From contig NC_047062.1 of NCBI RefSeq assembly GCF_902459465.1, positions 30,938,001 to 31,002,000 of the forward strand: a stretch of 64,000 nucleotides of DNA, in the 5' to 3' direction. Positions 37,701 to 64,000 of the stretch are shown here, in pieces (position 1 is the first letter of the stretch; every line of letters starts with the position of its first letter). The stretch comes from Asterias rubens (taxonomy: Eukaryota). The position numbers and the translations under genes are program-made. The notes under the pieces are model-generated. The model worked only from the letters and a program-made list of their open reading frames with translations. It had not been told where the DNA came from and did not search any database.

Positions 37701-40700
37701 TGGTCATGACGCGCCACAAAAAGATTCTGTGAAACGCATATCGGTGTTTTTGAGACTACTGTCAGCAGATGTCAATGCTGGAGGCACAATTTATTCTAAC
37801 CTCCTTCCTAGTTTATAACGCAAAGCGTCAAATCATACTTAGGGGGTCAATTCAAAAGAAACTCACTCTAAGCAAATCCATTGTTTTTGTTTCCTTTCTT
37901 TACCACTAGGCCACCATTGTGAACGAGCCACTCCTTGACCAAGCTTGCGGCAAACTGACCCACCAGGTGCAGTTGGTGCAATGGTGTCTGGAGAAAACAA
38001 AGTAAGAACAAGTTTTGAATTGAATGAAACCAATGTGTGTTAAAACACACATTGGTTTGCGGGTAATATTTTGAACAGGTAGAAACTATAAATAAATGGT
38101 AAACTTGGGGGTACAACCGAGTGTAAATTTCTTTAAGTTGGCTCTAAGCAGAGCCGGATTGGTCTCGATATTTCGAACAGTATGCTCGGCTTACTTCAGA
38201 TTCTCCTGAAGATGAGCAGAGTATACTGTTTGAAACGTTGGGACCAAACCGACTCTTCTCAGAGCCAACACTCGCCCTACGATTGTACCAGCAAGTTTAC
38301 TAGTTATTTATAGTTTCTTCCCATTTCTCCGCACCATGCAAAGTTTCAAACAATACCTAATATTTTTAACATCATTTCTGAACTTGACTGCAGGCCCTTG
38401 CTAGTTGCCAGCGGTGCAGATCTAGCATTTGATCCTAAAGTGAATGAGATGTTTCACAGTCTGGATTCCCGATCCGTTCTGCACATGCTGGACCACGCCA
38501 TCAACCTCACCCAGCTCGATACTGCAGAAGTCTTTGACATCCTGAGCAAGAAACCACAACTTGGTAAGAAAAACCGCAACCCTTCAATAGATCTAATAAA
38601 TAAGTGACAGCTTTATAACCTTTTAGAGACCGTAGCAGCTGCAAGCCACCTTGTTCCTAGTGGTTTATGATTTCGCGGCACCGTTTTTTCTTTCTTTCCT
38701 AGAATGCCTGATGATATGATGATAATCTATGATTGCTTTGCTAATAAGGGAATCAATGTGTGGTGAAGAGGTTTTCAACTAGTGGTTTAATCCAAACGAG
38801 GCCTGGTTCTTGATAATTTTACCGAGACAAAGTTTTTAAACCGATTCAACACACTTTGATTCCCATTCATAAACACCTTTTTGGTCAAAAAATATCAACA
38901 CTTTTTGGTCAAAAAGTAAAATAAATGCAAAAATTATATTGTTCAATGATTTCTTTCAACACAACACCCCTCCAGCTATGAAATGGTTAGGCCCTCACGT
39001 AAACAACTCCTTATAAGGGAATGCTGTGCGCGTCGCGCGAAGCGCGTGATGTGGCACAGCTGTTTCAGCCATTGCTCTCGACCAATAGGAATGAAGAAAC
39101 TGTCTTGTAAGCACAGGTACAAGCTCGCGTGTCACGCCCATGTTTCAACACTTTTTACTGGTCATAAACAAAGGTTTATACACACCCACGTGACGTGCTC
39201 TCCACCAATAGGAATAGCGACACTGTCTGAGGTATTTATGAATGTTTATTTATGATTGATTTGCTTTGTCTATTTTTCACAATTTTTGTGTACATTTTTT
39301 GTATTTATTTCAAAAGTGTAAAGTGCTATGATTATGCTACTTGGAATAACGCTATACGCCTGGTCATTATTATGCCTTTCTCAATAATAACCCCTGGAAT
39401 TGTGACTTTGAAATATCCAAATATATTGAATATTTTGTCCTAGAGGTTTTAGAGACCACACAGATTGTGCTTTCAAAAGGCGCATCAAGTTAAAAAGCAT
39501 CTGGCCCCCCCCCCCCCCATCTCGTTCTTTTTTCGCTCCTGTGATTTGTCAAACTTTATGCAGTTTAGATGACCATAAAAAGCATGATTCATTGGAAATG
39601 TATTGTGTCAAAATACGTGCATTAGGCCTATTACATGCGCGTACTAATGTAAGTGCCTAACAAGCCCCCCTCGAATGTACTTAACAAGTTTGTTGCTCAT
39701 AATACTTGTCAATATTGATAACCTTGCCTTTCGATGTTGTGTCTGATTTTTACCTCAGAAACCAAACCTTCCAAGGAAAGTAATAAATCTGGTGGGAAGA
39801 GCGTTCATTTTGAAGAGCCACGAGAGATGTCCATCGAACAGGAGAGGGACATTGCCATCTACCGTAGCTTCTTGGCCGTTAAGAACTGCATGACTGCACT
39901 CTCAAATAGCACACAGTGTAAGAAACCATCGGTAAGCCCTAAGACGAACAAGCAAGGGGTGTCCAGGGAAGGTTTGGCAGCATCAAAGACTGGTGATGAA
40001 GCACAAGGTATCGTGGATGGTACTGCTAGACAGCCTCAACATGCTGCTACTTCCGCTAGCAAGGACAGTTCAGGTTCGGATAGTCGGTGTGCGGATAGCG
40101 AACACGTAGACTCATGGGACAGGAGTGTCGTCCAGCACCTCCAGGAAGCCAGGCACCAGCTCTCTCTCCTGTACCCCTTGACGTACAGAGTGGAGATCCT
40201 TGAGAATGTCTTCTCTCTGCTCTTTGTACGTAGTGAAGATGCCTTTGTCGGGAAGGCAGTCATGTCTGACAGCGGTGGGGAGGAAGGGCTTGTCGACGAG
40301 GAGTGGCAGAACAGAAGTGTCATCAGTATCGAAAGCATCACCCCTAAGAATGAGGATGCTTCCTTTGAACTAGCAGCACAACCGCGTGTTGTTCAGTCAG
40401 CGGGTGACGCTAAGGTTCCAAGACTCAATCAAGAAGAGACGATCGTAGAATCAGCAAGCGCTGGTTTCTTAGAAACAATGATGAATGAAGAAAAGAGAGA
40501 TAGGACAAGCTCCGGATCGATAGTTGCCAAGAGATCCAACACCTCAGAGACGCACAGCCAGCACAGCTTTAACATGGCAGGAGGTGCCATGATTGGTTTC
40601 GTGGCTGGCGAAGACATTGTCGATGCGTTGTTGAGTATGCTCAAAGATTGCCTCACCGATCTCTCTGAGGCTAGGTACTCCCTGGCCGGACCTTCTGCAT

Positions 40701-43700
40701 CTGTCGGGATCCTCCAAGAAGCCGGTGGGAGTCTCATGAAGTATATGCACTGCTCTGTATCGACGTCATCCATGGCGCAACGCATCTCTCAGCTGACGCA
40801 GCGAATCAACGAAGCGTGGTGGCGCTATCGGCTCGTATCCCAAGCAACGAACTCTCAGAGCGCAGCGCAACGGTCATCTGGTGGCAGTAAGAAGCAGGGA
40901 GACAGCAGTAGTGATGAGGGGCTGTACACTTCTGGTTTTCATAGAGAAAAGGAGGACAGTAAAGAGGAGAAGAAGCAGAGCAAGAAAGTGAAGCATCGTC
41001 ACGACAGTCGCAGCCGCAGTGCTTCAGGTAAAGTTGATTCAATTTCATGCTAGTTTATCAGGTTTTTTTACATCTCATATAATGTTTTTAAAGGTACATC
41101 TCATATAGTGTTTTTAAAGGTATTATACAGGACTGGTAGAGCTGACAAATAGTCACAGACGTTGTTCATGTTTTTCAGTGGCTTTTGAGCGCCTGGTGTT
41201 AATATGCTCACATTACGGACATCTTTTTACATATTGTACTGTACCACAAACCATCACTGAGCTTCTCTTCCATGAAAGAGACATGCTGTAGTGAATACAG
41301 TTTTGAAAACTTTTCGGTTAAAAACATGTTGAATAGCAGTTATCACCATCCCATGCAATGTACCTTCATGATCGAGAGCCAAATTCTCAACGGTCAACTT
41401 ATGGTTTAATTTGTGTGGACAGTTGATAGCAGGTCTCCTCGGTTGGAGCTTTGCCTCAGGAACTAGTTTGATCACCTTGGAAGTTAAGATTCTAGACGTA
41501 ATTTTTTTAAACATGTTTTGAAAATGAAATTTTGAAAACTACAGGTCATATGAGACGCAGTTCATCAGGGTTGTATTACAGATCACTATCAGCCAAGTCC
41601 AACACTGGCATGTTGTCAGCAGGTCAGATTCAGGTCATGTGGAAATTAATGAGAGAAAACACTCAACTCATTCTCATACTCATGGGCTAACCAAGACATT
41701 GCTTGCTTCTTTGTTTCTTCCAGACTGTCATATTCTCATGCTTCATGCTTTTATTCAAACCCTGCTACTTTTGGTATACTCTCAGGCCCGCAGGAGACTC
41801 TCCTGCCGGACTGGCTCTTGCCACAAAACACCACAGGAGACTGTGGAGACTGACATGACTGAGTCCACTGTACACAAGCCACTAGTGGTGTACTCTCCTG
41901 AACAGCAGGGCGCTTTCCACAAAATGCCACAGGAGTCTGTTGGTTGAGGCTAGGTCCACACTTATGCACAATCCACTATCAGTAATACTCTCCTGCCCGA
42001 CTGGCTCTTGCCACAAAACACCACAGGAGACTGGGGAGACTGAGTCCACTGTACACAATCCACTAGTGGTGTTCTCTCCTACCCAACTGACTCTTACATG
42101 TAGCACAAAACACCACAGGAGACTGTAAACTGAGTCCACTGTACACAAGCCACTAGTGGTGTTCTTTCCTACCCAACTGGCTCTTAGCACAAAATGCCAC
42201 AAGAGACTGTGGAGAGTACAATCACAGTAGACAAGCCATGGGTTTCCTGTCAGTGATCATTCAAAACTGCCTCCCGAATTCAAATACGTTATGACAAACC
42301 AATTTTGGCAGCCTATCAGTCTCTTGTAATCTGGAGTTATAAAATCCACGATGACCTCCGGAAAAGGGAGATTTTGAGCATTAGCATTAATACCAGCAGC
42401 CTATTGCCCCTCTTTGTCTGGGGGAAACAAAACATTGCACGATGAGTTACTGGTGGTGAAGGGTTCGGGAATGGTTAAGGAATGCTAATGCAAAATATTT
42501 ATTTTGCTTTTAACTTAATTATAAATCATTACTGGTGTCACGGAAAAGGGTATCTGTAAGGGTGGGGTTAACCCTTAACACTAGCCTGGCATATTATTGT
42601 TTTAATAGTAGAAATTGGTATGAGGTAGTGAACAATACCTGGCAGGCTGTTAATAACTGTGCAACTTTTAAAATGTGTTCTTTATTTTTGAGTGTGTGAA
42701 TGCAACTTCATTTGACCATTCAACTTGTTGTGATCGGTACTGTTATTACATCAGAAAGATACATTTAATGACAATGTATATGTTTGAAATCTGGGCTACT
42801 TAATCTTCCTTGGGCAGGGAAAATTCACAGTTTACTAGCCCAGTGGGCTAATTTACAAAAAGCTTAAGCCAAGACCTTAATTTTTATTTTGTTTATTTGC
42901 CAAAGGATAATGCAGCCTCTAAAGCAGATGTTGAGGGTATTAATTTTAAATTTCAAAATAGCCATACATGTAGTGCATGCTATTAAAGAGCTCACAATTA
43001 CATGATTGACCAATGACCAGAGTCCAGTAATTTTAGCACCTTGGACATTAACTTTACATCCTACGGCTGAGGCTTCACCTCTTGTTGAGGCTTCACCTTT
43101 GGCTGAGGCTTCACCTCTGGCTGAGGCTTCACCACTGGCTGAGGCTTCACCTCTTGCTGAGGCTTCACCACTGGCTGAGGTTTCACCACTGGCTGAGGCT
43201 TCACCTCTTGCTGAGGCTTCACCACTGGCTGAGGCTTCACCTCTTGCTGAGGCTTCACCACTGGCTGAGGCTTCACCACTGGCTGAGGCTTCACCTCTGG
43301 CTGAAGCTTCACCTCTGGCTGAGGCTTCACCTCTGGCTGAGGCTTCACCACTGGCTGAGGCTTCACCACTGGCTGAGGCTTCACCTCTGGCTGAGGCTTC
43401 ACCTCTGGCTGAGGCTTCACCTCTGGCTGAGGCTTCACCTCTGGCTGAGGCTTCACCTCTGGCTGAGGCTTCACCTCTGGCTGAGGCTTCACCTCTGGCT
43501 GAGGCTTCACCTTTGGCTGAGGCAAACTGCATGCAATAGACTAGCTGCTGTAGACACTCAATCAAGAAGCAGCCTCGTTTTGTTTAATTTTGTTCTTTTA
43601 TTTGAGTTATAGATAAGAATAAAAAGTTATAGTCTTGAAATCCAAGCACTTTTTGTGTGATTCTCAGAGCACAGCACTTGATTGCACTAATTTCTAAAGT

Positions 43701-46700
43701 TGTTTGGGAACCGACTGGTGGAAGATTGAACTATCTCTCTGAGACTAAGGTTTTAAAAAGAACCGGTTTTGTACATGTAACATCTTGTTTCCAAAAATAC
43801 GCACTGATCCAAAATACTGATCGAAATGCCAAATAAAAAATAAAAACTCTGCTTTTCAGAATAACAACAACAGATATTTCATGTACATGGTGTTACTTTT
43901 CAACCCTTACTAAATTTAGGTTGAGATTTTGAAGTCTTCAACTTCACACTTCACTTGACAAAACTGTTATCATAAAAAGTAAAAACATCCCTCGAAACAT
44001 TTTCATCTTGTATCTATGGAATTTCAAAGAGATATGTGTTTATCATTTCTTCTTAAAGAGGGCAGTAACAGCAGTGCTAAGCAGCGACGTAAAAGGAGGC
44101 AAAGACGTCGGAGGTCAGATGCCAAACTGTCGTCTAGTGAGCGAGGAGTGGTCGCCCGTATGCTGTCGTCTCAAGACACACTTCTCAGAATGTGTTTACA
44201 TAGAGGGACCTATGCACAGGCTCTTCAGGTATCTGTCCTAAATATCATCTCAACCAGGGGCCAATTTCATAGAGCTGCTTAAGCCACAAATTTGCTTACA
44301 GTGTAGGCACGAAAATATCTCGCTTATTTTTCACATGTTACAGGCAAAAATGTCATGCCACATACATTGCTTGTGACTGGTATTTAGCTGTTGTTTACTT
44401 AGCATTAATTGAGTGGAGTCTTGGTTGATAATCTGATTTTACTAAGCAAGGATTTTTTTTTGCTTAAGCAAAATTTTGTCTAAAGCAGCTCATGGAGCAA
44501 TACTATAAAATTGGGCCCACAGGTGTAGTGACCAGTGCCCAGTTTCATAGAGCTGCTTAAGCAGAACATATTGGTTAAGAAGTTTTTGCTTAGCAATAGT
44601 AAGCAGGGAACCAGTCACAAACTACACACAAGATGGTTATTTGGCTGGTAACTCTTTTCTTGCGTGTGTCCAGTAAGCAAAATTGTAAGTAAATTTGTGT
44701 GCTTTTAAGCAGCTTTATGAAATTGGGTCATGGGGGAGTGTAGGGGTGTGACCTCCCTCCCTTGATAGTTTTGAGAGCTCTGAGGTTTGCAAATGGAAAC
44801 TAATAGGAACATCAAGACTAAAAGCACCACCCCGCCTGGTGGGCATTTCGTAGACCAGGCATTGTAGGTTGGGTTTTGACATTGATGATTACAGTTGTCT
44901 TGTGTGGTGGGTGCACAAGTATTTATTGAAACATTGGAAGACTGGTAGTGTGTCGAATCAGCGAGTCTACAAACTGGCTTCCATACACCCTTAAAAAGGA
45001 AATGCCTGTCAATTAATCTGCTTTGATGTAGCCTTTTCCAACATAGCACCAAGACTCTGGAATTCACTTTTATTACTCATCGCACTTGGTTTCGTTTCAC
45101 ATGGATGCTCCATCAGACAAACATACAAAGTCTGTAAAGATCAGTTACTGTCCCTTTCTTTCACTTGTAGGTGGTGAAGATGTTTGAGCTTGAAGACAAG
45201 CCAGAAGTTTCTGAGGTTTACTTTGCCGAACACTGGGAGCACACAGTCAGACGACTGCAAAGCCTCGATACCAAAGTTTCCAAAATGACTTCCACTTCAG
45301 TAGCAGCAAAGCCCAGACTATCCTCTTCATCCTCCATCGGGAAAATCGCTGCTTCAGGGACAGCATCACTGTCTGTTTCGGGTGTTGTGGACGACCTCCT
45401 GGCAACGTCGCACCTTCCGTTATTACCAACGACGCCGCTCGTCAACTCCGATCCACACGAGAAGCACTCCAGTGTGGCCACGATGCTGAAGAGCATCCAG
45501 ATGCTGAATGTTGCGGGGGTTGTGATCTTCGATCTAGCATGCACAGCCTGCATGTCATGGAAGGCCAGCACGGACTTACTGGACGTCGCCAAGGGTCGCC
45601 TACAGCTCGGACTGCACAGTCTTGGGGAGTATGACCAATCGTACAAAGCTCGTTCACCCCCACAGTCGGCCACCAAGTTGGACCCTCTGCAACTCCTGGT
45701 GGGCGTCTTGCCCTTTGTGCATCAGATCAATAACTTAATAGCACCAATATCTGCCGACTCGACTGCCCTCATCCGTCAAGACATTCTAGAAGAGTTTTAT
45801 CAGCGTAGCGCCAGCGAGGCTCTCCTGCAAGCCACAAGGCCATTAGATGCTGTCACATTGCGGGCTCAAATCAATACCATCCTGGAGCACAGGAAGGCAG
45901 TGATGGGGTTCAGTCGGGCTATCAAGACAGACAGCAAACGCCAGGTGCCGTTTTTTCCCGGATCGTCCAATGAGCTGGACGCCAGCTTGAGCTCTGCCAA
46001 CAAGGGACAATCCATGGTGCACCAGGCCATGAGGTATCTGTTGCAAACGTTTGATAAGAGCGGAAACTCATGTCAATCTCTGGCAGGTTTGCTGGCCGCT
46101 GCAGATACAGAGCAGAGTATGGTGTTTAGTAACTACCTGATGAGTCTGTATAGCCATGTCAGTGTGCTGTCGTCGTTACTTGTAGAAGCAAAGGACTGGC
46201 ATCCAGGTTTGTCTAACCAGTAGACCCCTATAAATACATGAGGTTAAAGATAGTGGACACTATTGGTAATTGTCAAAGACCAGTCTTCTCACTTGGTGCA
46301 TCTCAACATATGCATAAAATAACAAACCTGTGAAAATTTGAGTTCAATCGGTCGCAGAAGTTGCGCGATAATAATGAAAGAAAAAACACCCTTGTCACAC
46401 GAAGTTGTGTGCTTCCTGATGCTTGATTTCGAGACCTCAAGTTCTAAACTTGAGGTCTCGAAGTCAAATTCGTGGAAAATTACTTCTTTCTTGAAAACTA
46501 CGTCACTTCAGAGGGAGCTGTTTCTCTTAATGTTTTATACTATCAACCTCTCCCCATTACTCGTAATCAAGAAAGGTTTTATGATGATAATTATTTTGAG
46601 TAATTACCAATAGTGTCCACTGCCTTTAAACAAATGTGTATGTCTCGTGCACAACTCACAGCCAATGATAGGTCTTCCAGGACTTTAAATAACCCACTGC

Positions 46701-49700
46701 ACCCACAGCAACTGCCGTGGTGCCCTGTGCTTTTGCTTTGGTGCCCTTTGCTAAGTTTCAATACAAATTTTTAATTTCCTGAAAGAAGTGCCCCTTAATA
46801 GCGAAAAAAAATTGCTGTGCCCCTTCAAGAATGAATTCAAGGCCTGGTCTACAATGGCCTCAGTGAGGCACTGCTTTGGTCTTGTAAAATCAAAATTCAT
46901 CTTAAGACTCATTTATACAGATATAGATGACTGTTTTATTTCACTTCACATACATTGGAACATCTTGAGTTTGGACTTCTTTGTTGCATCTTCTGTAGGC
47001 CCTTTGTAACCTTGGGAAAAAGGCGCCTCATATAAATAAATGCTGATATGTATGTATGTAATGTATGTATGTATGCAAGGGGATTTATATTTAATATTTT
47101 GCCACATATTCCATTTGTGAGTTAAACCAGAAAACATTTATAGAGAGTTTGAGTAGATACAGATGCCTAACAACGTCTAAGGCAAACAAACCACCTCTTT
47201 TCAGAGCAAACACTTCTTCCCGAGAAACAATAACCATCCCCTTGTTGTATTTTCACAGGCCATGAGCAGCCATTGCATAGTGGGGGCACGAAGGCTGTCA
47301 ACCCATTCTGTGTCCTGGAGGAAAGCCCTACCTACCTTCTCGGCAAACTTATGTTCCAGAACCAGATCCCTCCAACAAGGTTGTCATTCAGGATTGATTT
47401 GAGGAAATAATATATCAGTAATAGATGAAATATACTATACAAGTATTAGATGTGTATGAGTGCGTTGTCATAGAATTGAATCAGAAGATATTAACAACTA
47501 TTTCATTGGAAAAGCAAGATTTCTCCAAAATACATGTACATTCAATGTTTGTTTGGTACAAACTTGCATGATCCTTGTCATTTGTACTAAAAAATTAATA
47601 TTTTTACTTGACATTTGAAATAGATAGTCACATCCATCCCCTTAACCTCTGCTGCTATCTATCAAGGGATCACACCTAAGTTTATGATACAACCTGGGAA
47701 GAGGCAGCCAGGGGTGCATCACAAAACTAAATTCCACCATAGACATTTTAGAGCTCCTCTCTAAAGTTGACTGGTTCATGAACATCGCCAATATTATGTC
47801 TACTCCTCTCTTCCAGGCTTGAAGGTGTTGCCGACCAGCTGAAGCTCAACCTCGTCCATGTCATCGTTCGGAGTTGTTGCCCAACCATCCCAATGCAGCC
47901 CATCAAGGAGACTAGGCGGCCCAGATCACACAGCGTCCCTTCCAGACCGTCTGGGCATGTCATCCTGAATGATCCTGGAGAGGAGACTAGATGGATTCAA
48001 GAGCCGCGACATCCTACGGCTGTTGCAGAGGAACTTCTCTCCAGAATGATCACGCTGATGAAAAGTATGTGAAGAGTACAACAGATCTTTTAAAAGTTGA
48101 TGGTTACACACATGTACAGACCCATAGCACAGCGCCCAGTGCACTTTCCTGTCCGCCATATTGGGGGTCAAAACATGCGCAAAAAGATTGTACACGTGCT
48201 TACACGTGCATTGGTGTGTAACTGTACCATCGTTTTTGTGCACATTTTGACCCCCAAAATGGCGGCCACAAGGCGCTGCGCAATGTGCAATGGGTCTATA
48301 CACCATCTTTTTCTGCACACAGAGTTTTAGGAACTTGCTTTTGTTGTTCTACTCTTCCCTTTTCAAAAGAACTCTCATGTGGAACACAGTTTAACAAATG
48401 AAACGTTGTGGGGACCTTTGTTACATTGTGAAATGGTTCTGCTGTTTCTCATTAGTGAATTTAGAATTCACTGTGTTGAGTTGGAGCAAATTTCAAAATC
48501 ATTTTCATTGCATCTCTTTTTCTCCAGCCCATGCAACAACCTCCAACTATAGCAAAGTGTTTGACCTACGGGCCAGCGTGCTAGCCTGCTGCTACCAAGA
48601 CTTCCTGGCCATCTCAGAGGCAACCAGGGAGCTGTCCTATGTTGATCTGGACCTGCTGGGGACGGCTAATCAGAAGCTTTGTTTCTTTGTGAATGTGATG
48701 AACCTCTTGTTGGCCCATGCCTCCCTCTATCACATCTATCAGCAGCTCATATCCAAGGTGAGGACCCCTTGATGTCACATACCATCTTCTTTTCAGTGGG
48801 CTCAAGTTCTGTATGTTACAGAATGTGAGTTTGAGTCGTGGCCTTGGCCCAACTTCATGGCTCTGCTGACTTTAAGCAAAGAATCGGTGCTTACGAAAGC
48901 AGGGAATTCTGTGCTTATGTCAAGCGTATTTCAAGGGTTAGCGGGGAATTTGGCTTCAGCGCTTGCAGACTTCATGTTATTCGGCATTCTCTGCTTACAC
49001 AGCTAGCGCAGAAATTTGGTGCTTGCAAATAAGCGGGGAATGGTTATCGTAAGCGCAGAATTTGGAGGTTAGCAGAGCCATGAAATTGGGGCGAGGTGAG
49101 CAAGGCATCTTATCATAATTTCTTCTCTCCATCATAGAGTGCTAATGGGTACCGATGAGAGCTGGGGAGTAACCTGCCATATACTGGCATCCTGTCCAAG
49201 GGAATAGAAATACTCTGTCGTTTAATGCCAATCAACCTGGTACCCATTTGTACTGCTGTGTGGAGAGAAGCAATTATGATAATATGCCTTACTCAATGAC
49301 ACAAGTGTCACGACTTACCAGGCCAGGATTCGAACCCACATTATGCTATTACAGAACTTCAGTCCATCACCCTAGATTGCTCGGCTATGACACCCCCTCC
49401 TTGGTATATTTAGAATATAAACCATCCTTGTTGTTTAAATACAGGATGTTATGCGACAAACTTCTAGTCACAAGAGGCACAGTTCACTGACGGAGAGACT
49501 CCATTTTGAAGATGAGGTCGCCCTACCAGGCACCAGCAGTAGGCAGATCAGCGACCGTATCACGTATCTAAACAAGATGGCGTATTGCATTGGCCAGCTA
49601 GGCACAGTAACGTGAGTAGGCACTAAGGGGGTCATCCTAAGTGTGAAATGTTTTAGAGGGAATTTCGGGTTCAACAATGGAAGTTGAGGATTTGAAAGCC

Positions 49701-52700
49701 TGAATGAGCTTGTTTGGGGACGACATTGTTTTTAGTTATATTGAGAGTAAAATGTTGAAGAAGAAAAAAATTGCAGGAAAATTTGTTACTTATAATTTTT
49801 TTAATGTTATGAGCATACTCAACAAATTTCTTCTTTATCATGTTTATGTTTTGTACATTTATTGTTTGGTTGCAGTGCCTTTGAGCTTCGTTACACCATT
49901 CTCCGGGCAGGTCTCCATCCACCATCTTGTTTCAACAATCTACTCCAGCACAGATTACATGGTATAAATACACCTCATTTTTCTCTATAGATGATTCACA
50001 AACCTTGTATGAAGAAGATCAATGTTTCCTTAAATTGCAAAATGTTTAAAATATTTGTCTTTGAAGTACACAGTCAGCAGTACACAGTCAACTCTCTTAA
50101 TGTCTGACCATTCGATGTCGCCCACTTTGGTTTTGAATGATCGATAAATTATGTCGGCCTGCAATATTATTTCTTGTGGTGACCACATCTACAGAGTACA
50201 CTGGCAACCCTCCCACAATCTGAGCATTCAATATCATCCACGTTGGTACACAAACTATGCCAGCCTGAAATTTAATATCATGTGGAGAGTGCATATACAA
50301 CATAAACACATGGACACAGTATAGTCGTGTACACAAATGTGCCACCATACACAAATTATGCAGTTAACTATTTTCAAACGTTTTGTCAAGTCACTTGAAT
50401 ATGTTACCAAGAGTAGGAGAGTTAATGTGTTGTCTATTTATATATATTTTTTGAAGCATTAAGTCCAAGTGACCCTTGGCATAAGTATCTACCACCAGCT
50501 GAAACACGTTTGCTTTTCGTCATCTCAAGTGGATGCCAAGTATCACCAATCCTGGAGGTAGAGTAATTTGATCAAGATTCTTAAGGGTAATTTTGTACAA
50601 TAAAGGATTTCAGCAAAAAAACTGGGAAAGTATACAACATTGACTTACTTTAAAAGGTAATTTAACTTCAATGATGAGCAGTTCATCTGCCTCAAGCAGT
50701 CAACAGCCCTACTGGCTTGTGCGTTATCCAATTAATTCCACTTTTTGGAAAAGGAATTACATAAATATAACAGGTGTGAGTTGCCAGATGAAAAGGATGT
50801 TTTAGCCTCTTTCTTATGCAGCTTTCTTGCAGTGCAGCCAATCAGTGAACATTTTAGCCAACTTGGTGGTCACATTAAAGAACTTCTTCTTCTTGGAGAA
50901 TTTTTGAATTGGCCAAATAAGAAGACTAATCATGCAGTTCCCTCCTCTGTTGATACTTGTAGGTTATGAAATCGGAAGACGTTGAGGGGCAACTGGAAGT
51001 TGCAATGCAGCGATTCCTGGAGAATTATGTCATAATAGACGAAGAGAAACTCAAAGTAAGTGGTTTATGCCCTAATATCTCTTTTTATCTGGAATGTTTT
51101 TACATACATGGTAATGCACGCTTGTACATTGCTGTTGTCCGCCAATTCCCTTTAAATCGTGCATGAAAATTATTACTTCAGTTACTGGGCAGTTTATTTC
51201 ATTCCTTAAACCATCTCAGCTTTGGAGAATTTGAGTCCAGTGCACTAGAGCTCGGCCGTGATATGTTGCACACTGTGTTGATTTAAAGGCAGTGGACACT
51301 ATTGGTAATTACTCAAAATAATTATTAGCATGAAACCTTTCTTGGTGACGAGTAATGGGGAGAGGTTGATGGTATAAAACATCGGAGAAAGGGCTCCCTC
51401 TAAAGTGCCATAGTTTTCGAGAAAGAAGTAAATTTCCACGAATTTGATTTCGAGACCTCAGATTTAGAACTTGAGGTCTCGAAATCAACCATCTAAACGC
51501 ACACAACTTCGTGTGACAAGGGTGTTTTGATGTTCGATGACCGATTGAGCTCAAATTTTCACAGGTTAGTTATTTTATGCATATGTTGAGATACACCAAC
51601 TGTGAAGGCTAGTCTTTGACAATTACCAATAGTGTCCACTGCCTTTAAAGGTACTTTCTTTGTTTCATTGAAACCGTTTTTTGTTCTCACACTCATCTTT
51701 CAATGTTCTCTCGTTGCAAAATGTCATTGTAGGTTACAATACCTAAACAGCTAGACTGGTTCCGTAAGGACTTCACTGGGAAGAGTCTGGGTATAGACAT
51801 TGAGCAGGGTCATATCTATGGTGGACTCCTCAACGTGGTGGCTCCTCATATGTCCAATCACATGGGAGAGAAACTGGAGAGTTACGTCCTGAGCTGTTCA
51901 CCTGGGCACATTCAGCTGGAGGAAAAGACGCCCTTGTCTGGCGGTATGTTCAAAAACTATTCAATTGTTTATTCCGGAGAAGCTCTGTTTCATTCCGGAG
52001 AAGCTCGTAAAGAATTTCCGAGTTTGTCGACAACAAGTTGGAAAGTGTACAACCTTTTCACTGAGTGGGTGTGTTTTAATTATTTGGGTGATTCAACTTA
52101 ATGGATGAGCAGTTAATCTACCTAAGGGAATGTAAGCAGCCCTACTGGTTTGTGTGTGATTCAATTAAGTCCACTGTTTTGTAGAAGGATTTACATGGAG
52201 ATAACAGGTGTTAGTTGTCAGATGAAAATGATGTTTCATTTTAGCCTCTTAAATGTAGTGTGGAGCTACGCTTTGTATGATATTATGTAGTGTTTTAGTG
52301 TTGGGGAATAATCAACGAGTAAATGTCATTTGTTTTATTTTATACTAGGTCCGGCCGACAGACCACTGCTTAACAGAGGCCGCTCCTTCCGATTCACAGT
52401 CAGAATCGAACCCTATGATTTCTCCTATGGTTACAAGTTTGATTACCACTCCACGCCTACACTCAGCACCCCTCAGACCCTCAAGCACAAGCGAAGTTCT
52501 TCACAGCCGGAGAACCTTCCGAGCGTCGAGCCGCTGAAAAGTCTTCCTCATCCAACATTCAGCATGACTGAGTCTACCATGGCCTACCTCCACTCCAAGT
52601 CTAAACTGGTGGCATCGCTCGCCGGCCTCATCAGTGTTGCAGTCGATGAGAGACCGGATCGGTTCGCTCTGAAGAAGTCTTTTGAAAGCAGTGGGAGCCT

Positions 52701-55700
52701 GACCAGTCCCATGGGGACCCCAAAGAGCCTTGTCTTCGATGAGGGGGCGTTCGGGGAAGACAGGGAGTACCACGCTACCAAAGCTTCCTCACGAGTAGAG
52801 ATGGCTAAAGTCTTGCAGCATGTGATGGGATACTCCACAATGCAGAGGTATGTGGAGACCTACCTGAGCAGTGTTGTTGAAACGGCCGAGGCAGTGGAGA
52901 GTGAGGCCAATAGTTACCTACCGGAGAGCCTAAGTGCTGCCATGACACTGCGTGACGCACACTCCTGCACCCTTGCAAACCATCACAGTGACCACTATCA
53001 GGCGATGATGTCTTACACATTAAATTACCTGGTCGCACACTCCAACTGGACAGAAGCCTTGCAGCTTATTGAGGCTCTGCCCAAGACAGACTCAACCTCT
53101 GATTGGCTGCCTGATCTGCCAATCATTCGAGACTTCATACTCTGCTGTGCAGCCCAGGCAGACCTTCCTCAGAAAAGCGTGGATATTTTGATTTCGGAAT
53201 CCTGGAGGTCCCTCCTCTGCCTTCAAGACAAGGACTTGTGTTCTCGCGTGACCCTTGGTCTGTTACCCCGTCTACCAGTTTCGGTGTGTCTGCAATTACT
53301 GAATCACTGTGTTGCACATCCGGCTTCAGGAGCCAGCCTAAGAAAAGCTGTTTGTGACAAGTTGGAGCAAATGAAGACATATAATAAGGTTGACTTTCTT
53401 GATACTTTATGCAAATTTTGTAGTGTTTAGATTTTGTTTTTAAACATTTAATGCAAAACTTTTGGTATTCTGTTACTTATAATGCCTTTTAAAGCTGCTT
53501 TTTGTAATTTGCTTATTTGTATCATATATCTTTCTCTCATTGTTTATTTTATTGTTCTCTTTATGCGATTAGCGGCTTTTTGCATTAGGCGCTTTACAAA
53601 TGTGTTATCATTATTATTATTTATAATCCTCCTTTCGATTATCAAATTTTATGATAACCCTTTTTGAGAATCCCTGCCAGGAAAAATTATTGTTTACTTT
53701 TTAGTTTAGTCAGTCAACTACTGTGCAAACACCACTCTAATGGGTTTAGATCAACCGTGTTATTGAAATCCATGTAGAATAAAAAATATTGACTACCGGG
53801 TGCTCATTGCTATGGGTATAATCCATTAGTTGCTATGAGTATAGTACATTGGTTACTATGGGCATTGTACATTTGTTGCTATGTAGTGTGCTGTTTTTGC
53901 AAAGCTTTCTCATCAAAATAAATCATATCTTAAGTATTGTTTGAAGCTTGCCATGGTGTTGAGACATAAGAAGAAACTATAAATAATTAATAAACTTGCG
54001 GGTACAACCATGTGTAAATCTCTTAGGGTGAGTGTTGGCTCTGAAAAGAGCCGGTTGGGTCTCGACGTTTCAAACAGTATACTCTGCTCATCTTCACGAT
54101 AAATCATATCTTGTGAGGCGCTGGAAATCAACACAAGGCGGAGTTTTTTTTTTAGAGGCTTCATACCATTCATTAATAAATCAACCATACGATTAAATTC
54201 CTAGATCACAGAATATGCCCAGGTCAAAACCTCGCCGCTGATTTCTGAAGATGAGACCGACCCTATGGCGTTACCGAGTCCCTATACCCAATGGCAGAGG
54301 GTGGCAACAGACAGTGCAGAGGACCCAAGTGAGGTTCTTGATGTCATGTTGAGTGCTGGGGACTTTGATCTGGCAAAGCGATGGGCTGTCCTTCACGGCG
54401 TGTACCACGCCCTGAAAGAGGTTAGCATGAGAATATGTTCTCTATTATCTATATTCTAAACTCTTGGCTGGAAAGTTTTGAAGTAGCCACCAAGTGAGAG
54501 TAAAAAAGAAGTAACTATATCTAGTAATCGTGTGGATACAACCAAATGTAAACTGCTTTTGTGAGGAGTGTTGGCTCTGAAAAGAGATTTGAAGTACATG
54601 TAGCCAACAGGTATTAAGAAAGGAAGGAGTAACTCCATGTGTAACTCGTAAGCTTGCGAGTACAACCATGTGTACGTGTAGGAGTGTCGGCTCTAAAAAA
54701 AAAAAAAAAAACGTTTTGAAGTAACCAACAACTAAAGGAAAGAAAGAAGTAACTAGTAAGCTTGCGAAAATAACCATGTGTAAATCTCTTTTGGTAGGTG
54801 TGTCGGCTCTACAACAAAAACAAACGTTTTGAAGTAACCAACAACTAAAGGAAAGAAAGAAGTAACTATAGTAAGCTTGCGAAAATAACCATGTGTAAAT
54901 CTCTTTTGGTAGGAGTGTCGGCTCTACAACAAAAACAAACGTATTGAAGTAACCAACAACTAAAGGAAAGAAAGAAGTAACTAGTAAGCGTGCGAATATA
55001 ACCATGTGTAAATCTCTTTTGGGAGAAGTATTGACTCAGCCGTTGGGGTCTTGACATTTCGAACAGTTTACATTGCTCAGCTTCAGGAGAGATGGAGACT
55101 AACAGAGTACATTAAAGTCAATGTTTCTTGAAGTTTTATTTTCAGTTTGTTTTAAAGAGTAGTAAAGTAACAACTTAAAATGCGAGGCATGACATGTATT
55201 TAACTCAGGGCACTCTGCTAGGTTTAAGTGGCAATTTTTCTTGTATTTCTTTCCCAGGCAATTCATGAGAAACATCTGCAGCATTTATTGAGAGACGGCA
55301 GCAACACTCTTATTGCATATCAGGTAAGTAAACAACATCATTCATTTTCTTCTTACTGCCGTCAATGGACCACCTTGGTCTAATGTCAAGAAACAGACTG
55401 GCTTGCAGACATTTGTGTTTACCAAATACTACTTTTTTGTTGAACCAGTGAGAGTTCGGCTATCGGTCATGAATATGCATGAGTTTGAATATGTATGTTT
55501 TCTCTCCTTCAGATCCTAGTGCATATCCCCGATAAGCTGATGTGTCTGCAAATCTGCCAGAGTCTACTGGTGAATAGACCAGTCAGAATTAGGCTATCCA
55601 TCATGAATATGCATGAGTTTGAATATGTATGTTTTCTCTCCTTCAGATCCTAGTGCATATCCCCGACAAGCTGATGTGTCTGCAAATCTGCCAGAGTCTA

Positions 55701-58700
55701 CTGGTGAATAGACCAGCCTCTCAATCATGAATATGCATGAGTTTGAATATGTATGTTTTCTCTCCTTCAGATTCTAGAGCATATCCCCGATAAGCTGATG
55801 TGTCTCCAAATCTGCCAGAGTTTACTGGCCGAGGAGGGTCCAGAGGATCGGATTAGTCTGGCCAGCACGGTGTTCTTGATTCAGTTCATGATGGATCATT
55901 TCCTCGACAAGATAAGCATGGAGGAGATGGAGGAGCTACAGGCTTTGAGTCTAGGAGTCAAGGTACTATACCTTCATTCAATTGTTTCACCAGGGGTGGA
56001 TTCCACAAAGATTTAAGACTAGGCTTGTCTTTAGTTAGGACGAGTTACTCATCCTTATTTAGCACTAGCCTTAGTTTTTAAATAACTCTTAGGACTAGTC
56101 CTAGGTTAGGACTATCTTTGTGAAATTGACCCCTGGGCCGTTTGGCAACCTTCTGCTTGGGGGGTCTTTTTCTGTTTCTGCTAAGCAAGGTATTTCTGAG
56201 CTTAGCCGTTTTTGTTTGTACAAGCTGTATGAAACTGAGCCCTGGCGAATGCATTTTTAATTTATAACCATAGCACCTTTTTTCATTGCAGGCTTTGCTG
56301 TGTTTACCAGAGCCAGAGAGATCTGAATGCGAGGATCTTGTTTCCAAACCGATGCTTATACTGGAACAACTACTCATGAATACCAAGGTAATGGTCGTGG
56401 GTAAACACTCAAGGACACTGTGGTAACACTCATGAACACTGAGGTAACACTCATGAACACTGAGTTAACACTCAAGAACACTGAGGTAACATTCATAAAC
56501 ACTTGTTAAACACGGTAGAAATAAACCCTCTGGCTAGTACTTGTAAACACTATACATACACTGAGGCACGTTTTTAACACCCACTTTGGTGTTTTACAGA
56601 TAGAGCATGCATCAGCCGTCCTGGACTGTTTGAGACGCGAACTTCAAACCAACAACTTCAGAGGCAGTGAATTATCACTACAATCATGCGATGCATTAGT
56701 GGCTAAGTACGCCAAGAAAGCTATAAAGCTAGTCGTTGCTGTACAGAGCCCACCACAAGGTTTGAAACTGTCCAACTCTTAATGAATATTTATCTATGAA
56801 AACTATCTATACACTGTATTGTGCGTGCGTGTGTGCATGCATGTGCTGTAGAAATCAAACAGTGAATATTGCGTGCTTCGTGCTTCATTGATGTACGCAT
56901 TTAGACATGCATACGGTTTGCCCTACAAGATGGCGACTTTCATAGCAAAAAAGGGGTCATTCAATACGGTCTATAATATTCATAAATTTATGATACTCTC
57001 TTATTTGTGGTCAAGAAATATTTCCTAGTAGCTTCCCATTGTCCCTCGTTTGTTTGTAATTTTGTAAATTCTTGGCAACAGCTCCCGTTTTTTTTGTGTA
57101 CACATTTTCCAACTGGGGACCTTCACCCAGCCAGGGACCCTACTGTCCTCTTTTGTTATAGGTTCCTGGATTGAATGTGTGGATTAATTGTGTGTACTGG
57201 AAAGAATCTATTTCAAAATGTTCACTCTGATTTACAAAATTCTCCATGCTCAAGCTCCCTCGTATCTTGTTAATTTGATTCACTTACAAATTGGTATTTC
57301 TGATGCACACAGCCATCGGCTCAGCTCCTCATCAGACTTGACCCGGCTCTCCATTCCTAGATCCGAAAGGAAAGCCGGGGACACAGCCTTCTCAGTTGCT
57401 GCGCCCCGCTCGTGGAACATTCGTCCCACAAGTTTGAGAGAAGCTGCGTCGTTGGCTGTGTTTAAACGCCTCCTCAAGACATTTTTATTCCCAGAACCAT
57501 CGTAATTTGCTCCTCTTTTTGTTTATCTATCGGCCTGTCGTTGGTCTGGTTATGTTTTTGTTCTTGTGTTGCGCTCTGTTCTTTGTACAATGTATAGCGC
57601 CTATAAATGCTTTGTATTATTACTTATTATTATTACATACCCAAGGGATGCCAGTTTTCCAGCTTTATTCAGGAATTACGGCTTTGTCAGCGTTTTTTTT
57701 TCAGCCTCTGAAGGAAAGAGGGACGAGGGATTATTCTTCCTGCAAGGACATTATTCGCTCCAGAGTTTTGGCAATATCTTAATATTGCGACCATTTTTAA
57801 ATGAACTTTTCACGAGTTAATTTTGTTGTATACATCTACGTAAGATTAAAACAATCAAACTTTTCAAAAGAGAACATTTCTTTTGAACCAGCTTTCCTCA
57901 CCACCTGTGGTGTTTGTTTTCCTTGACAGATCTAGATTGTACGATACGGCCCGCATCGAGCCTGAGTGTTACATCCCCAACTGGGCACAGAAGAAGCCGT
58001 GGTAGACTTAGTGTATCATCTATGTTATCTACAGTGAGCTCTCCAACGTCACCATCATCGTCACAAGCTATACCTGTACCTAGTGAAAGAGGTGAGTTGA
58101 CTCTATGTCTGAATAAAGTGGATACAAGAGTGGCAAGGAGGTATTCAATGGGCAATTATAACCGGCAGGGTCTTGACCGTGGGATAAAGGACCGTGCCCA
58201 AGGGGAGGTCCTTTGGGCACGGCCACGACCCTGCAAGGTTTAAGACGAACGGTTAAGCCTGAGTTACTGCTCTATCATTCCTGTTACGACGGGAATGCTC
58301 CATTTAAGAAAGATGCTCAAATTAGACACATCCTTTTCGTCTGGCAACTAACACCTGTTGTCTCCATGTATTTGCTTTACTAAATGGTGGACTTCAATGG
58401 ATCATACACCAACCAATGGTACTACTACTGCTACTTTTTAGTTTTTAATCCATAATATAAATTGAACAAGTTTATTTGGAATGTAATTGTTTCTTCCCAG
58501 GATTAACGTGTCTCAGCTCAGTGGCTCTCATTTAAGCTTTGCTGAATCATGTCAAGAAATTAATCTAAACAAATTTCTATTTACCTTTTATAATGTTTAA
58601 CAATATTCAATGCTTTTTCTCAATGTATAGGACCCAGCCCCACCCCATCAGTTCAAAGTGTATCTCGTGGTCTCTCCCCACGTGGCCAGTCTCCACGTGT

Positions 58701-61700
58701 TACATCATCGTCACGCAGGTCCTCATTATCCACTGTGTCGGACGCTGTCTCTATAACAGGAAGTATAGCGCCCTCAACCATCGCTCCCATCCAAGAAGGG
58801 CTACCCACCTCGCCACCGAAAAGAGACAGTTGGGTACCAGACACTAAGGTGACACACTGTATGGTATGCAAGGATGAGAGATTCAGCATGGTGAGTAGCC
58901 TGATACCCTAACAAGGAGGTTCTTTAAGAAACATTTGAACAAAGGTTTGATTGCCTGCATGTGATATTTTCTTTCCTGAAAAGAACTGACTTGTTAAACC
59001 ACTGGTTCTTTTTGGAACCATCGCAACTCCAAAAGAGATTCACTAGATATTTTTCTTCAAAAACTGAATATTTTTCACACTATTTTTTTAAAGTTGTTGA
59101 AAAATGATACAAACAATTTTTAAACTTCCGAAGAAGTTTAAAATTTCACAGGCTTGTTATTTCAGGTACAGTACTTGGAGGGCCACATAAAGTGCAGTTA
59201 CTGGCTTTTGACAACTATCAATACTGAAACCAATTGTTATTACAGTTCAACAGACGTCACCATTGTCGTCGTTGTGGTCGTGTTGTCTGCTGGCGATGCT
59301 CTCAGCTGAAGGCAGTGGTGGAGGGTTACGGTGACACTCCAGTTAGAGTCTGCGATCAGTGCTATCAAGCATTCATCATGCCAAGGTAGGAATTCAAGTT
59401 GACTTCAGGCGATTGTAGCAGGAACAGAATTTCACAATGCATGTAGTTGTGGACCTATACTTTTTATTTTATTTTTTATTTGTGTGGTTTTTACCCATAC
59501 ACCGATGTGTGTTAGCACTGTATACTCATTACTTTCCCGAGTCCTGTGAACAAAATATCACAGGCATATTTACTCGGGTGGGATTCGAAGCCAAGACCCT
59601 TGCAATTCTAGAGCAGTGTCTTACCAACTAGACTACCGAGGTTGCCTGGTAGCTATAGGCAGTTCGAATCCTATGTTTTGACAGCGGGTACCGCAACGAT
59701 ATAATATATGTTTGTTCGTTTTGTTTTTTACATTTATCTGTTTACACTGTATATGTATAATTTATTATGTGGTTCTTATTAATGTACATTCAATAAATGT
59801 TATTCATATGTATTTACTTGTATATAACTGCTGTGGTTTCAACCACTTTTACATATCTGCTTATTCTCATTTTGTCAAATAATCTTTATATTTTGAAAAA
59901 AATGTATATTGTCTATTTCTAGCCTTAACTGTTAATGTTTTCATCTGGAGCTGGCCAACGGATGTAATTGCCCATTGAGGATGATTGAAGTTTTTTGGAA
60001 TTTAATTTAATTGGAAAGCATGGCCTAGTCCCAGTGTCTATGAGAAACTTGTTGTGTACAATACCATCCTTGGCCCAATCTGAGATCATCAAACAAAAAA
60101 ACTGTTGAACATTCCTATGGGTACATGTCTATCTCATTCTTTATCAGGTGATAGAAGCTTTGATGCATGTACACCAAAGCTATGGAATGATCTTCTCTAT
60201 CAATTTCGCACACTTGACTCGTAACAGATCTTCAAAAGCCGTGTTAAAGGGTGTATGTACTTTTTGTTGGACAAAAAACACAATGTCCACAGATTTACAC
60301 TAAACTTACACAGTTTGAAGATAATGATAGTAGAAAGCTTTCCTGAAAATATTACTTGCTGAGGTGCTGTAGTTTTTGAGAAATGAGTAAAACAATGTCA
60401 TGAAAAATAATTTTTGTCTCATGAGGCAAAAATTATTTTAAGCATTTACAGACGTATTTTCATGACATTGTTTGACTCATTTCTCTAAAACTACAGCACC
60501 TCAGTAAGTAATATTTGAAGGGAAGCTGTTGTGTTTACCCTACACTGTGTTCAACACTCTGTACTTTCCCAAGTCTTGTGGAAAAATTGACAGGCATAAT
60601 ACTCGGGTGGGATTGGAACTCATAACCTTTGCACTCTGTTGTGATGTTTTAAGACCCCTTTGTTAACTCAGCGCTACTGTTTGACTATTTTCCTCACCTT
60701 TGCAGACCACAGCACGGGAGTTCATCATCTCAGATTCTTGAACAACGCCTCAAAGTCAGGCAACCAGGTCAGAAAAGCTGCAGTAAATTTATAATTTTGT
60801 TTACAGACAAACAGCGAGATTGATTATCCAAGAAAACAAAATTTTAATGTTTTTTTTAGTCTAAGAGCCAAAGGATTAAGGAGTTCACATTAGTGCTGTG
60901 CCTACAGGGAAATGTGTTGTGCTGAAATTCTAGAGCAATAACAAACTGTAAATTATTACAATATTAATAATATATTAGTTTTATAAAGCCTTGGAGCCAT
61001 ATAGTTTCACAGCTCCATTTCATTTCCTTTGTGCTCCTGTTGTGTCCAAATCTACCTTGCCTCCAGAATGTTGCTGTTTTGTTTTAAACTTTAAACTCCC
61101 TTTTGTTTTGTTTTAATTTTGTGTCCACAAATCCCCCCCCCCCCTCCTGTCTATGGCAGTTTTCCCAATTCCTGTTTGTCTGTTTAACTCTAGTAATATT
61201 TTTAATATTATTGTATTATCATATAAACTTGTACTTATATTTTTGATGTAATTTTATTGTTAACCAAATGCCATTAGTCTGTGACTTTTTATTTGGTGTT
61301 GTATTTTTATATGAAAATAAACCAATTTTGAATTGAATTGAATTGAATATTAATAAAAAAATTGTCTTTATTGAAATGATTGCATTATCAGGGAGTCGTA
61401 GACAGTCGCCCAGCTGCAGCAGAGGAACATCGCCCAGTTTCCGAGTCTCCCCTAGCTCATGGCAACAGCGCACCCCCGTACCTGGATCCAGTTTAACCAG
61501 TGGACACTCTGGAGGATCGGAAACACTTTATATGGAAATCATGGAGTGGAAGTTAACATTGGATAACGCCATGAACACGTTCATCAGAGAAGACTTCTAT
61601 TATGAACAGGTAAGCGAAGAGTTGAACAGCTAAAAAGGGAGATATCGAGTATGATTTTCAGTACCCTTTGTCCCTTGTTGAACTAGGGAAACAATAGTTG

Positions 61701-63842: not shown

Positions 63843-64000
63843 GTGAGCCTTGAATGGAGGTTACAGCATTTATGAGGACATTTTCCAAAGCTATTAGTTA
63901 AGTAATTTTATGCTAGCAGAGGTATTGTATTGATTCAAGAATTTATAAATTTTAGTATGAATTCCAGTACCTTTTCTCCCATGTTGAAAGGGGGAAACAA

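Follow-up and report, generated by a model that had tools for sequence, protein, structure and literature searches.

What occupies the roughly 430 amino acids (aa) that separate two conserved anchors of spastizin in a starfish, when the same anchors lie close together in vertebrates? The question is raised by a window of 64,000 nucleotides (nt) of the Asterias rubens genome (assembly GCF_902459465.1, contig NC_047062.1, positions 30,938,001–31,002,000; coordinates below are counted within this window), which contains part of the ZFYVE26 gene. Its product, spastizin, is a lysosome-recycling protein that is mutated in the hereditary spastic paraplegia SPG15 and has been studied almost only in vertebrates and flies. 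An earlier note on this DNA had claimed that a block of six exons places a DUF547 domain inside spastizin, had offered loss in vertebrates or lineage-specific acquisition as its possible history, and had taken the phase-1 introns on both sides of the block as the sign of a shuffled or optional module. Our analysis makes it highly probable that the domain is a constitutive part of spastizin which was already present in the bilaterian ancestor and was lost in vertebrates.

Exact protein-to-genome mapping of the RefSeq Asterias rubens ZFYVE26-like protein XP_033626820.1 gave 32 exon blocks in the window, all with GT-AG junctions, and the gene extends past the 3' end of the window (table 1). When the three forward frames of 47600–52700 were read, splicing of exon A through exon E7 yielded a stop-free translation of 725 aa, which is an exact substring of XP_033626820.1 (residues 1397–2121). 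The block between exon A and E7 consists of six exons at 48528–51943 with a total of 888 nt, or 296 codons, and is flanked symmetrically by one phase-1 intron before E1 (48064/48528) and another after E6 (51943/52349). These in-frame exons had been proposed from the letters of the window, and the translation, the RefSeq identity and assembled transcripts all bear them out; every motif of the DUF547 series quoted at that time was found in the 725-aa splice, and the distance of about 430 aa between the anchors was confirmed. Within the whole protein, Pfam detected the FYVE zinc finger at residues 2485–2547 (68.9 bits) and TPR_ZFYVE26 (PF25569) at residues 3153–3276 (137.3 bits), the latter coded 3' of the window. 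The insert interrupts the alpha-solenoid some 700 residues N-terminal of the FYVE finger and lies between low-complexity linkers which are Pro/Ser/Arg-rich in the starfish.

Table 1. Features of the ZFYVE26/spastizin gene in the window; residues are those of XP_033626820.1.
Feature	Position	Strand	Length (nt)	Residues	Content
ZFYVE26/spastizin gene, part in window	31745..63843	+		1–2758 of 3300	
Exon A	47817..48064	+		~1396–1478	Conserved anchor VIVRSCCP, low-complexity linker; then phase-1 intron
Block exon E1	48528..48757	+	230	1479–1555	N-terminal helices, F..N..N....H motif
Block exon E2	49445..49611	+	167	1556–1610	Variable Ser/Arg-rich stretch, then Y.(V/I)GQLG motif
Block exon E3	49876..49961	+	86	1611–1639	
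Block exon E4	50457..50557	+	101	1640–1673	DPW...R.LF.....SP motif including invariant proline
Block exon E5	50963..51055	+	93	1674–1704	
Block exon E6	51733..51943	+	211	1705–1774	Strand and W(F/Y)..DF motif, two helices, loop; then phase-1 intron
Exon E7	52349..53388	+		1775–2121	Last DUF547 beta strands (RFTVRIEPYDF), linker, second anchor, alpha-solenoid
FYVE zinc finger coding	58828..59371	+		2485–2547	Two exons, 58828–58890 and 59246–59371

The embedded DUF547 domain was recovered by Pfam in XP_033626820.1 at residues 1525–1692 (PF04784, 48.3 bits, E-value 1.3e-12, profile positions 6–125 of 125; gathering cutoff 27 bits), and the match begins inside E1 (window 48665) and ends inside E5 (window ~51019). 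Orthologues from Asterias amurensis, Acanthaster, Diadema, Glandiceps, Saccoglossus, Branchiostoma and Haliotis scored 44–63 bits, and that of Owenia scored 26.7 bits, marginally below the cutoff. A hidden Markov model (HMM) built from 53 orthologous segments matched the starfish splice over its full length with 336 bits (profile positions 2–330), and its alignment reaches segment residue 428, which is in E7. The motifs F..N..N....H, Y.(V/I)G.LG and R.LF.....SP are near-invariant in 53–56 ZFYVE26 inserts and are all present in the starfish; the likeness of these inserts to canonical DUF547 members was taken from the Pfam score only. Canonical members probably have a Cys where the ZFYVE26 inserts have Ser before the invariant Pro. 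In addition, language-model features agree with the DUF547 assignment.

Structural models gave the same assignment. AlphaFold models of the starfish segment (residues 1468–1830; predicted local distance difference test score, pLDDT, 87.4) and of the urchin segment (pLDDT 85.7), with predicted template modelling scores of 0.87 and 0.86, respectively, form a single compact alpha/beta domain of ~340 residues. Part of the variable stretch of E2 appears in the starfish model as a low-confidence loop (pLDDT 64–72 at model residues 91–110). The starfish model matched an Atlas cluster made up entirely (100%) of DUF547 proteins, with template modelling (TM) scores of 0.64/0.75 and a root mean square deviation of 2.7 Å over 255 residues. 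When the urchin model was compared with AFDB clusters using Foldseek, the top 30 of 30 matches had a probability of 1.0 and E-values of 1e-9 to 1e-12, and the named ones among them were DUF547, PH, DEP, RasGAP or MIP1 proteins.

The models also define the borders of the domain. The first helix comprises model residues 2–18 (residues 1469–1485), and as the exon A/E1 junction lies at residue 1478, this helix straddles the upstream phase-1 intron, its first ~10 residues being coded by the end of exon A. The last confident strands (model residues 323–328, or 1790–1795; pLDDT >90) are located in E7, ~15–20 codons past the phase-1 intron, and fold matches extend to model residue ~337–340; the AFDB matches of the urchin model mostly start within the first 35 model residues and end between 288 and 357. 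The first ~35 residues of E7 complete the fold in the model, and in window coordinates the fold extends over ~48031–52449, with an end near the one given in the earlier note (52450). Since it starts in exon A and ends in E7, the six-exon block is not the structural unit. Starfish spastizin holds a true DUF547 domain, which is encoded by the six exons together with the last ~10 codons of exon A and the first ~35 codons of E7.

Assembled transcripts contain the block. In contigs of 3791 nt and 5614 nt, which come from two runs of different studies, exon A, E1, E2, E6 and E7 are contiguous in record coordinates, so that the junction 48064->48528 predicted in the earlier note was found in both; the 3791-nt contig also lists E4 as a piece, and the unlisted gaps in both contigs are as long as the block exons that are left over. 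In a third run, which is labelled as another organism, E6 is joined to E7. The starfish spastizin orthologue includes the six block exons constitutively, as coding sequence. Might they instead form a separate nested gene, or might the DUF547 match be a chance resemblance of motifs? When exons were scanned against Pfam one by one, only E1 matched DUF547, and weakly (E-value 0.0053), which is the one point in favour of these explanations. However, the contigs run continuously from exon A through E7, and the score of the spliced protein and the confident models sharing the DUF547 fold argue against chance, so that these explanations are almost certainly wrong.

A different possibility is that the block is an optional cassette, alternatively spliced or shuffled, and that spastizin is made with or without DUF547. 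The phase-1 flanks on both sides have been kept in four phyla, the gene has another in-frame cassette with phase-1 introns on both sides (41545–41622), and the vertebrate gene, in which exon A is fused to E7, resembles the skipped form. On the other hand, 10 of the 31 introns of the gene in the window are phase 1, and therefore two phase-1 flanks are expected about once in ten cases and are unremarkable. The contigs of the two studies include the block, and the skip joint 48064>52349 was not listed in any assembled contig, although such contigs lose rare variants and most joints, mainly those of intronic repeats, are not displayed. Annotated isoforms that omit the block were absent in Asterias amurensis, Branchiostoma and Haliotis, whose isoforms differ elsewhere. 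Finally, the fold begins ~10 residues before the block and ends ~35 residues after it, so that skipping would leave orphan pieces of the domain on both sides. The contigs, the isoforms and this mismatch between block and fold argue against regulated skipping; a rare isoform is possible, and an optional cassette is improbable. The meaning which had been given to the phase symmetry is thus not supported, and constitutive inclusion is the reading that we follow below.

The exon at 41545–41622 deserves mention in its own right. This 78-nt phase-1/phase-1 exon of ZFYVE26 (residues 929–953) corresponds exactly to a 26-residue stretch that is absent from isoform X2 of Asterias amurensis, and amphioxus isoform X3 is without a homologous 29-residue phase-1/phase-1 exon. 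It appears to be an old in-frame cassette of spastizin that has been conserved.

We then considered the host protein. The amphioxus orthologue, which was used as a bridge, matched vertebrate ZFYVE26 proteins with ~1000 bits, the starfish flanks map onto these proteins in the same order, and a profile made from invertebrate sequences scored vertebrate proteins at >1100 bits on either side of it. Vertebrate spastizin (human chain PDB 8YAD) is the orthologue, in which an alpha-solenoid, the FYVE finger, another alpha-solenoid and C-terminal TPR_ZFYVE26 follow one another in the common order. In Branchiostoma belcheri XP_019625924.1, Haliotis rufescens XP_046355808.2 and Glandiceps talaboti XP_077991490.1, the three Pfam domains and their order are those of the starfish protein, and PF04784 is precomputed. 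Invertebrate ZFYVE26 orthologues share the exon structure of the starfish insert and differ only in lineage details, among them the variable stretch of E2, which is longer in the starfish.

Two surveys were used to examine the distribution of the domain. In a whole-length search with the amphioxus query, 120 ZFYVE26 proteins with precomputed Pfam annotation were listed, and PF04784 was present on those of cephalochordates, hemichordates, crinoids, a nemertean, and many molluscs, chelicerates, insects and crustaceans, and on none of the vertebrate entries among them. A block HMM was also run over 123 fetched ZFYVE26 orthologues, all longer than 1500 residues. It was positive in 72 of them (echinoderms, hemichordates, amphioxus, molluscs, a nemertean, an annelid, chelicerates, insects and crustaceans) and negative in the other 51, which comprise 48 vertebrates, two beetles and one mite. 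The starfish block gave no match to vertebrate proteins even at an E-value of 10.

In vertebrates, the anchors (VIVRSCCP of exon A is alignable to the vertebrate proteins) were found as close together as the earlier note had given for the human protein (about 70 aa): their spacing is ~35–60 residues in colugo, gar, medaka, tinamou and hagfish, against ~430 aa in the starfish. Two hagfish fragments, which were not among the 123 orthologues, have both anchors ~40 residues apart and are without the domain. In gar and colugo, a profile of the region could be aligned to either flank of the insert and skipped positions ~65–448, where these species have 42–51 residues; vertebrate spastizin thus has 40–50 unalignable residues in place of the entire DUF547 fold and its linkers. 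The buprestid beetle Agrilus has six residues between the flanks and misses profile positions ~61 to ~448, the same positions as vertebrates, and a tardigrade retains a DUF547 remnant of 22 bits with the block HMM. Independent losses of the insert thus took place in beetles and a mite, and it has decayed in the tardigrade.

Introns were compared by mapping proteins onto their own genomic loci and reading phases 5' to 3' across the region. In the starfish they are 1, 2, (exon A), 1, 0, 2, 1, 0, 0, 1, (E7), 0, and those of the acorn worm are identical; the abalone has one extra phase-1 intron inside exon A, and amphioxus is as abalone except that E1 and E2 are fused. The introns occupy the same alignment columns across the mapped species, and E3, for example, is bordered by introns of phases 2 and 1 which are kept in acorn worm, amphioxus and abalone. 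These shared positions and phases indicate that the exon structure of the insert predates the protostome–deuterostome split, and make separate insertions in the two groups unlikely. As judged from the alignments and gene maps, the insert and its introns can be placed in the last common ancestor of the sampled bilaterians, with retention in most invertebrate phyla. Of the two histories offered before, vertebrate loss is therefore retained. An acquisition restricted to echinoderms or ambulacrarians would account for nothing other than the absence of the domain in vertebrates, and has practically no chance of being correct: the domain occurs at the corresponding position in cephalochordates, molluscs, a nemertean, an annelid, chelicerates, insects and crustaceans, and intron positions and phases are identical between starfish and acorn worm and are shared with abalone and amphioxus bar one or two lineage-specific gains or losses.

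The phases of medaka, gar and tinamou are 1, 2, (one exon with both anchors), 1, 0. Neither the block nor any of the seven introns is left, and with exon A fused to E7 the two flanking exons form one exon; on either side of the region the intron phases are common to vertebrates and invertebrates. This condition of vertebrates is derived, a clean excision that took place before hagfish and gnathostomes diverged. Three routes are possible: recombination with an exon-skipped complementary DNA (cDNA), an in-frame deletion with both breakpoints in exons, or a deletion followed by intron loss. We did not retain the more specific proposal that exactly the six-exon block was removed through an exon-skipped cDNA, which is indistinguishable from the other routes; the span missing from vertebrates (profile positions ~65–448) exceeds the block (113–387), and the linkers are not alignable.

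The medaka (~13522/13592), gar (36736/38484) and tinamou (16006/16616) loci also have a phase-1 intron inside the exon equivalent to E7, which is found in none of the four invertebrates. It is an intron gain in these vertebrates, in the same region as the loss of the seven introns.

A phmmer search with E7 against 1.84 billion representatives returned only 26 proteins, none of them non-bilaterian, and a word-indexed search with a crinoid segment returned four proteins; a profile search added echinoderms and one ichthyosporean, and no cnidarian, sponge or plant. In the SPG15-like protein of this ichthyosporean, Chromosphaera perkinsii (3091 aa), TPR_ZFYVE26 is present, a FYVE finger is not detectable by Pfam and the N-terminal half is not alignable, which suggests that non-animal holozoans have another set of domains or that the protein has diverged strongly.

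Several results weigh against our interpretation as a whole. Neither Pfam nor the block HMM detected DUF547 in the Chromosphaera protein, and the Atlas plant cluster with TPR_ZFYVE26 does not list it; in view of these ichthyosporean and plant homologues, the word ancestral holds only back to the bilaterian ancestor. No chain in the PDB came close to the fold (best Foldseek E-value 0.46, best VIA Z 5.2), and a profile of the insert had no match among PDB sequences, human ZFYVE26 (8YAD) included. In addition, the repeated loss in vertebrates, beetles and a mite and the decay in the tardigrade show that the coat in which spastizin works is workable without the domain.

As an alternative to insertion on the animal stem, the domain might go back, as part of spastizin, to the AP-5-bearing ancestor of eukaryotes. 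DUF547 occurs widely among eukaryotes, often in fusion with trafficking or signalling domains, and the N-terminal halves of distant SPG15 proteins are too diverged to align, which makes absence hard to prove. The Chromosphaera and plant homologues speak against such an age, although this evidence is thin, and we regard it as unlikely while giving it appreciable weight. The bilaterian date is the one used in what follows.

Sequence conservation is consistent with a working domain. Identity to the starfish was calculated for urchin, crinoid, acorn worm, amphioxus and abalone, and was 34–41% in the fold, 26–35% in the adjacent solenoid and 57–79% in the FYVE finger. Across 53–56 inserts there is no or almost no variation at certain positions, occupied by Asp, Asn, His, Tyr, two Gly, Phe and Pro. 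By these measures the DUF547 insert has evolved no faster than the neighbouring solenoid and has been under purifying selection, as expected of a working part of the protein.

What the domain might do can be approached from its host and from its relatives. Human spastizin forms a complex with SPG11 and AP-5 that acts in autophagic lysosome reformation, and human SPG15 is built of an alpha-solenoid, the FYVE finger and a second alpha-solenoid, with FYVE on long unresolved linkers so that it must reorient to meet phosphatidylinositol 3-phosphate (PI3P) (bioRxiv 10.1101/2024.06.14.598999). Knock-down of SPG15 in the fly supports a role in lysosome reformation. Other DUF547 proteins, such as the plant MIP1-leucine-zipper protein AT2G23700, class IV GRX-DEP-DUF547 glutaredoxins, Entamoeba PTEN and bacterial stand-alone or thioredoxin-fused proteins, have the same fold (TM 0.5–0.75 over ~220–260 residues) and are ~18–22% identical to the starfish domain. 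In these smaller proteins DUF547 is a terminal domain of ~245 residues, whereas in the starfish it is an internal insert in a solenoid coat protein of 3300 residues, and its longer loops bring it to ~340 residues. The fusion partners of DUF547 fall into a membrane and signalling group (PH, DEP, RGS, RasGAP, kinase, and PTEN in Entamoeba) and a thiol-redox or radical-SAM group (glutaredoxin, AhpC/TSA-thioredoxin and radical-SAM). A plant MIP1-DUF547 protein with no transmembrane helices localises to a polar plasma-membrane domain.

Because of these fusion partners, we tentatively suggest that DUF547 may be a second tethered accessory head of the SPG11–SPG15/AP-5 lysosome-reformation coat, similar to the PI3P-reading FYVE finger that hangs on linkers. 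Such a head would add a further binding or sensing input to the coat, which might be a ligand, a membrane feature, a redox state or a partner protein; we give this suggestion somewhat less than an even chance. Its main functional rival is that DUF547 serves as a module for catalysis or with a link to redox chemistry, or that it descends from such a module as a dead enzyme. Fusions to glutaredoxin, AhpC/TSA-thioredoxin and radical-SAM occur in both eukaryotes and bacteria, stand-alone bacterial homologues exist, and a few polar residues (Asp, Asn, His and Tyr) are near-invariant among the ZFYVE26 inserts. However, we found no demonstrated activity of any DUF547 protein in the searched literature, the PDB holds no structural relative, and many other partners are membrane or signalling modules; we thus consider a catalytic or redox role unlikely, but worth keeping in mind beside the accessory head.

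Extended to most animals, the accessory-head idea would give their AP-5/SPG11/SPG15 coat a pair of tethered heads, one (FYVE) that reads PI3P and another (DUF547) that reads a further signal and was dropped by vertebrates. We regard this picture as doubtful. If it were true, invertebrate spastizin would be the first setting in which the DUF547 family could be assigned a cellular role, and the vertebrate loss would mean a rewired input into lysosome reformation. A Foldseek search with the domain against reviewed UniProt models, human and mouse spastizins included, gave a best E-value of 0.38 and no fold match, and, judged by these predicted structures, the human and mouse proteomes seem to lack the DUF547 fold.

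Part of this architecture is already public. Automatic annotation shows the three domains on dozens of ZFYVE26 entries, with PF04784 precomputed, and an amphioxus UniRef fragment is named 'DUF547 domain-containing protein'; the novelty that the earlier note had seen is reduced to that extent. It stands with respect to the literature, in which our search found no paper treating both DUF547 and ZFYVE26 and none on DUF547 that concerns spastizin; the paper describing the fly SPG15 model mentions FYVE as the only domain. Spastizin with DUF547 belongs to known families and is not a new kind of system. What appears to be new is the bilaterian-wide conservation including introns, the exon fusion in vertebrates, the repeated independent loss, and the lack of a fold match among reviewed UniProt models.

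These findings tie a widespread and uncharacterised family to a defined membrane-trafficking machine, which provides a concrete assay system for DUF547. They also offer a clean case in which a domain was lost on the vertebrate stem and its flanking exons fused, with independent losses elsewhere. Caution is advised in using invertebrate SPG15 models, which carry a module that is never in the proteins of patients.

Several repeats were observed in the introns around the block. The intron before E1 has a hairpin with 36-nt arms (48150–48268), and the E1/E2 intron contains a high-depth element with inverted arms (48846–49400). Copies of one repeat, each of ~150 nt, 78–85% alike and in the same orientation, are located at 50656–50802 in the E4/E5 intron and at 52087–52236 in the E6/E7 intron. 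The E5/E6 intron carries an element at 51282–51649 that resembles a miniature inverted-repeat transposable element and has perfect terminal inverted repeats of 29 nt; its word depth was 1e5–1e6 in four of four runs, which indicates a very high copy number in the genome.

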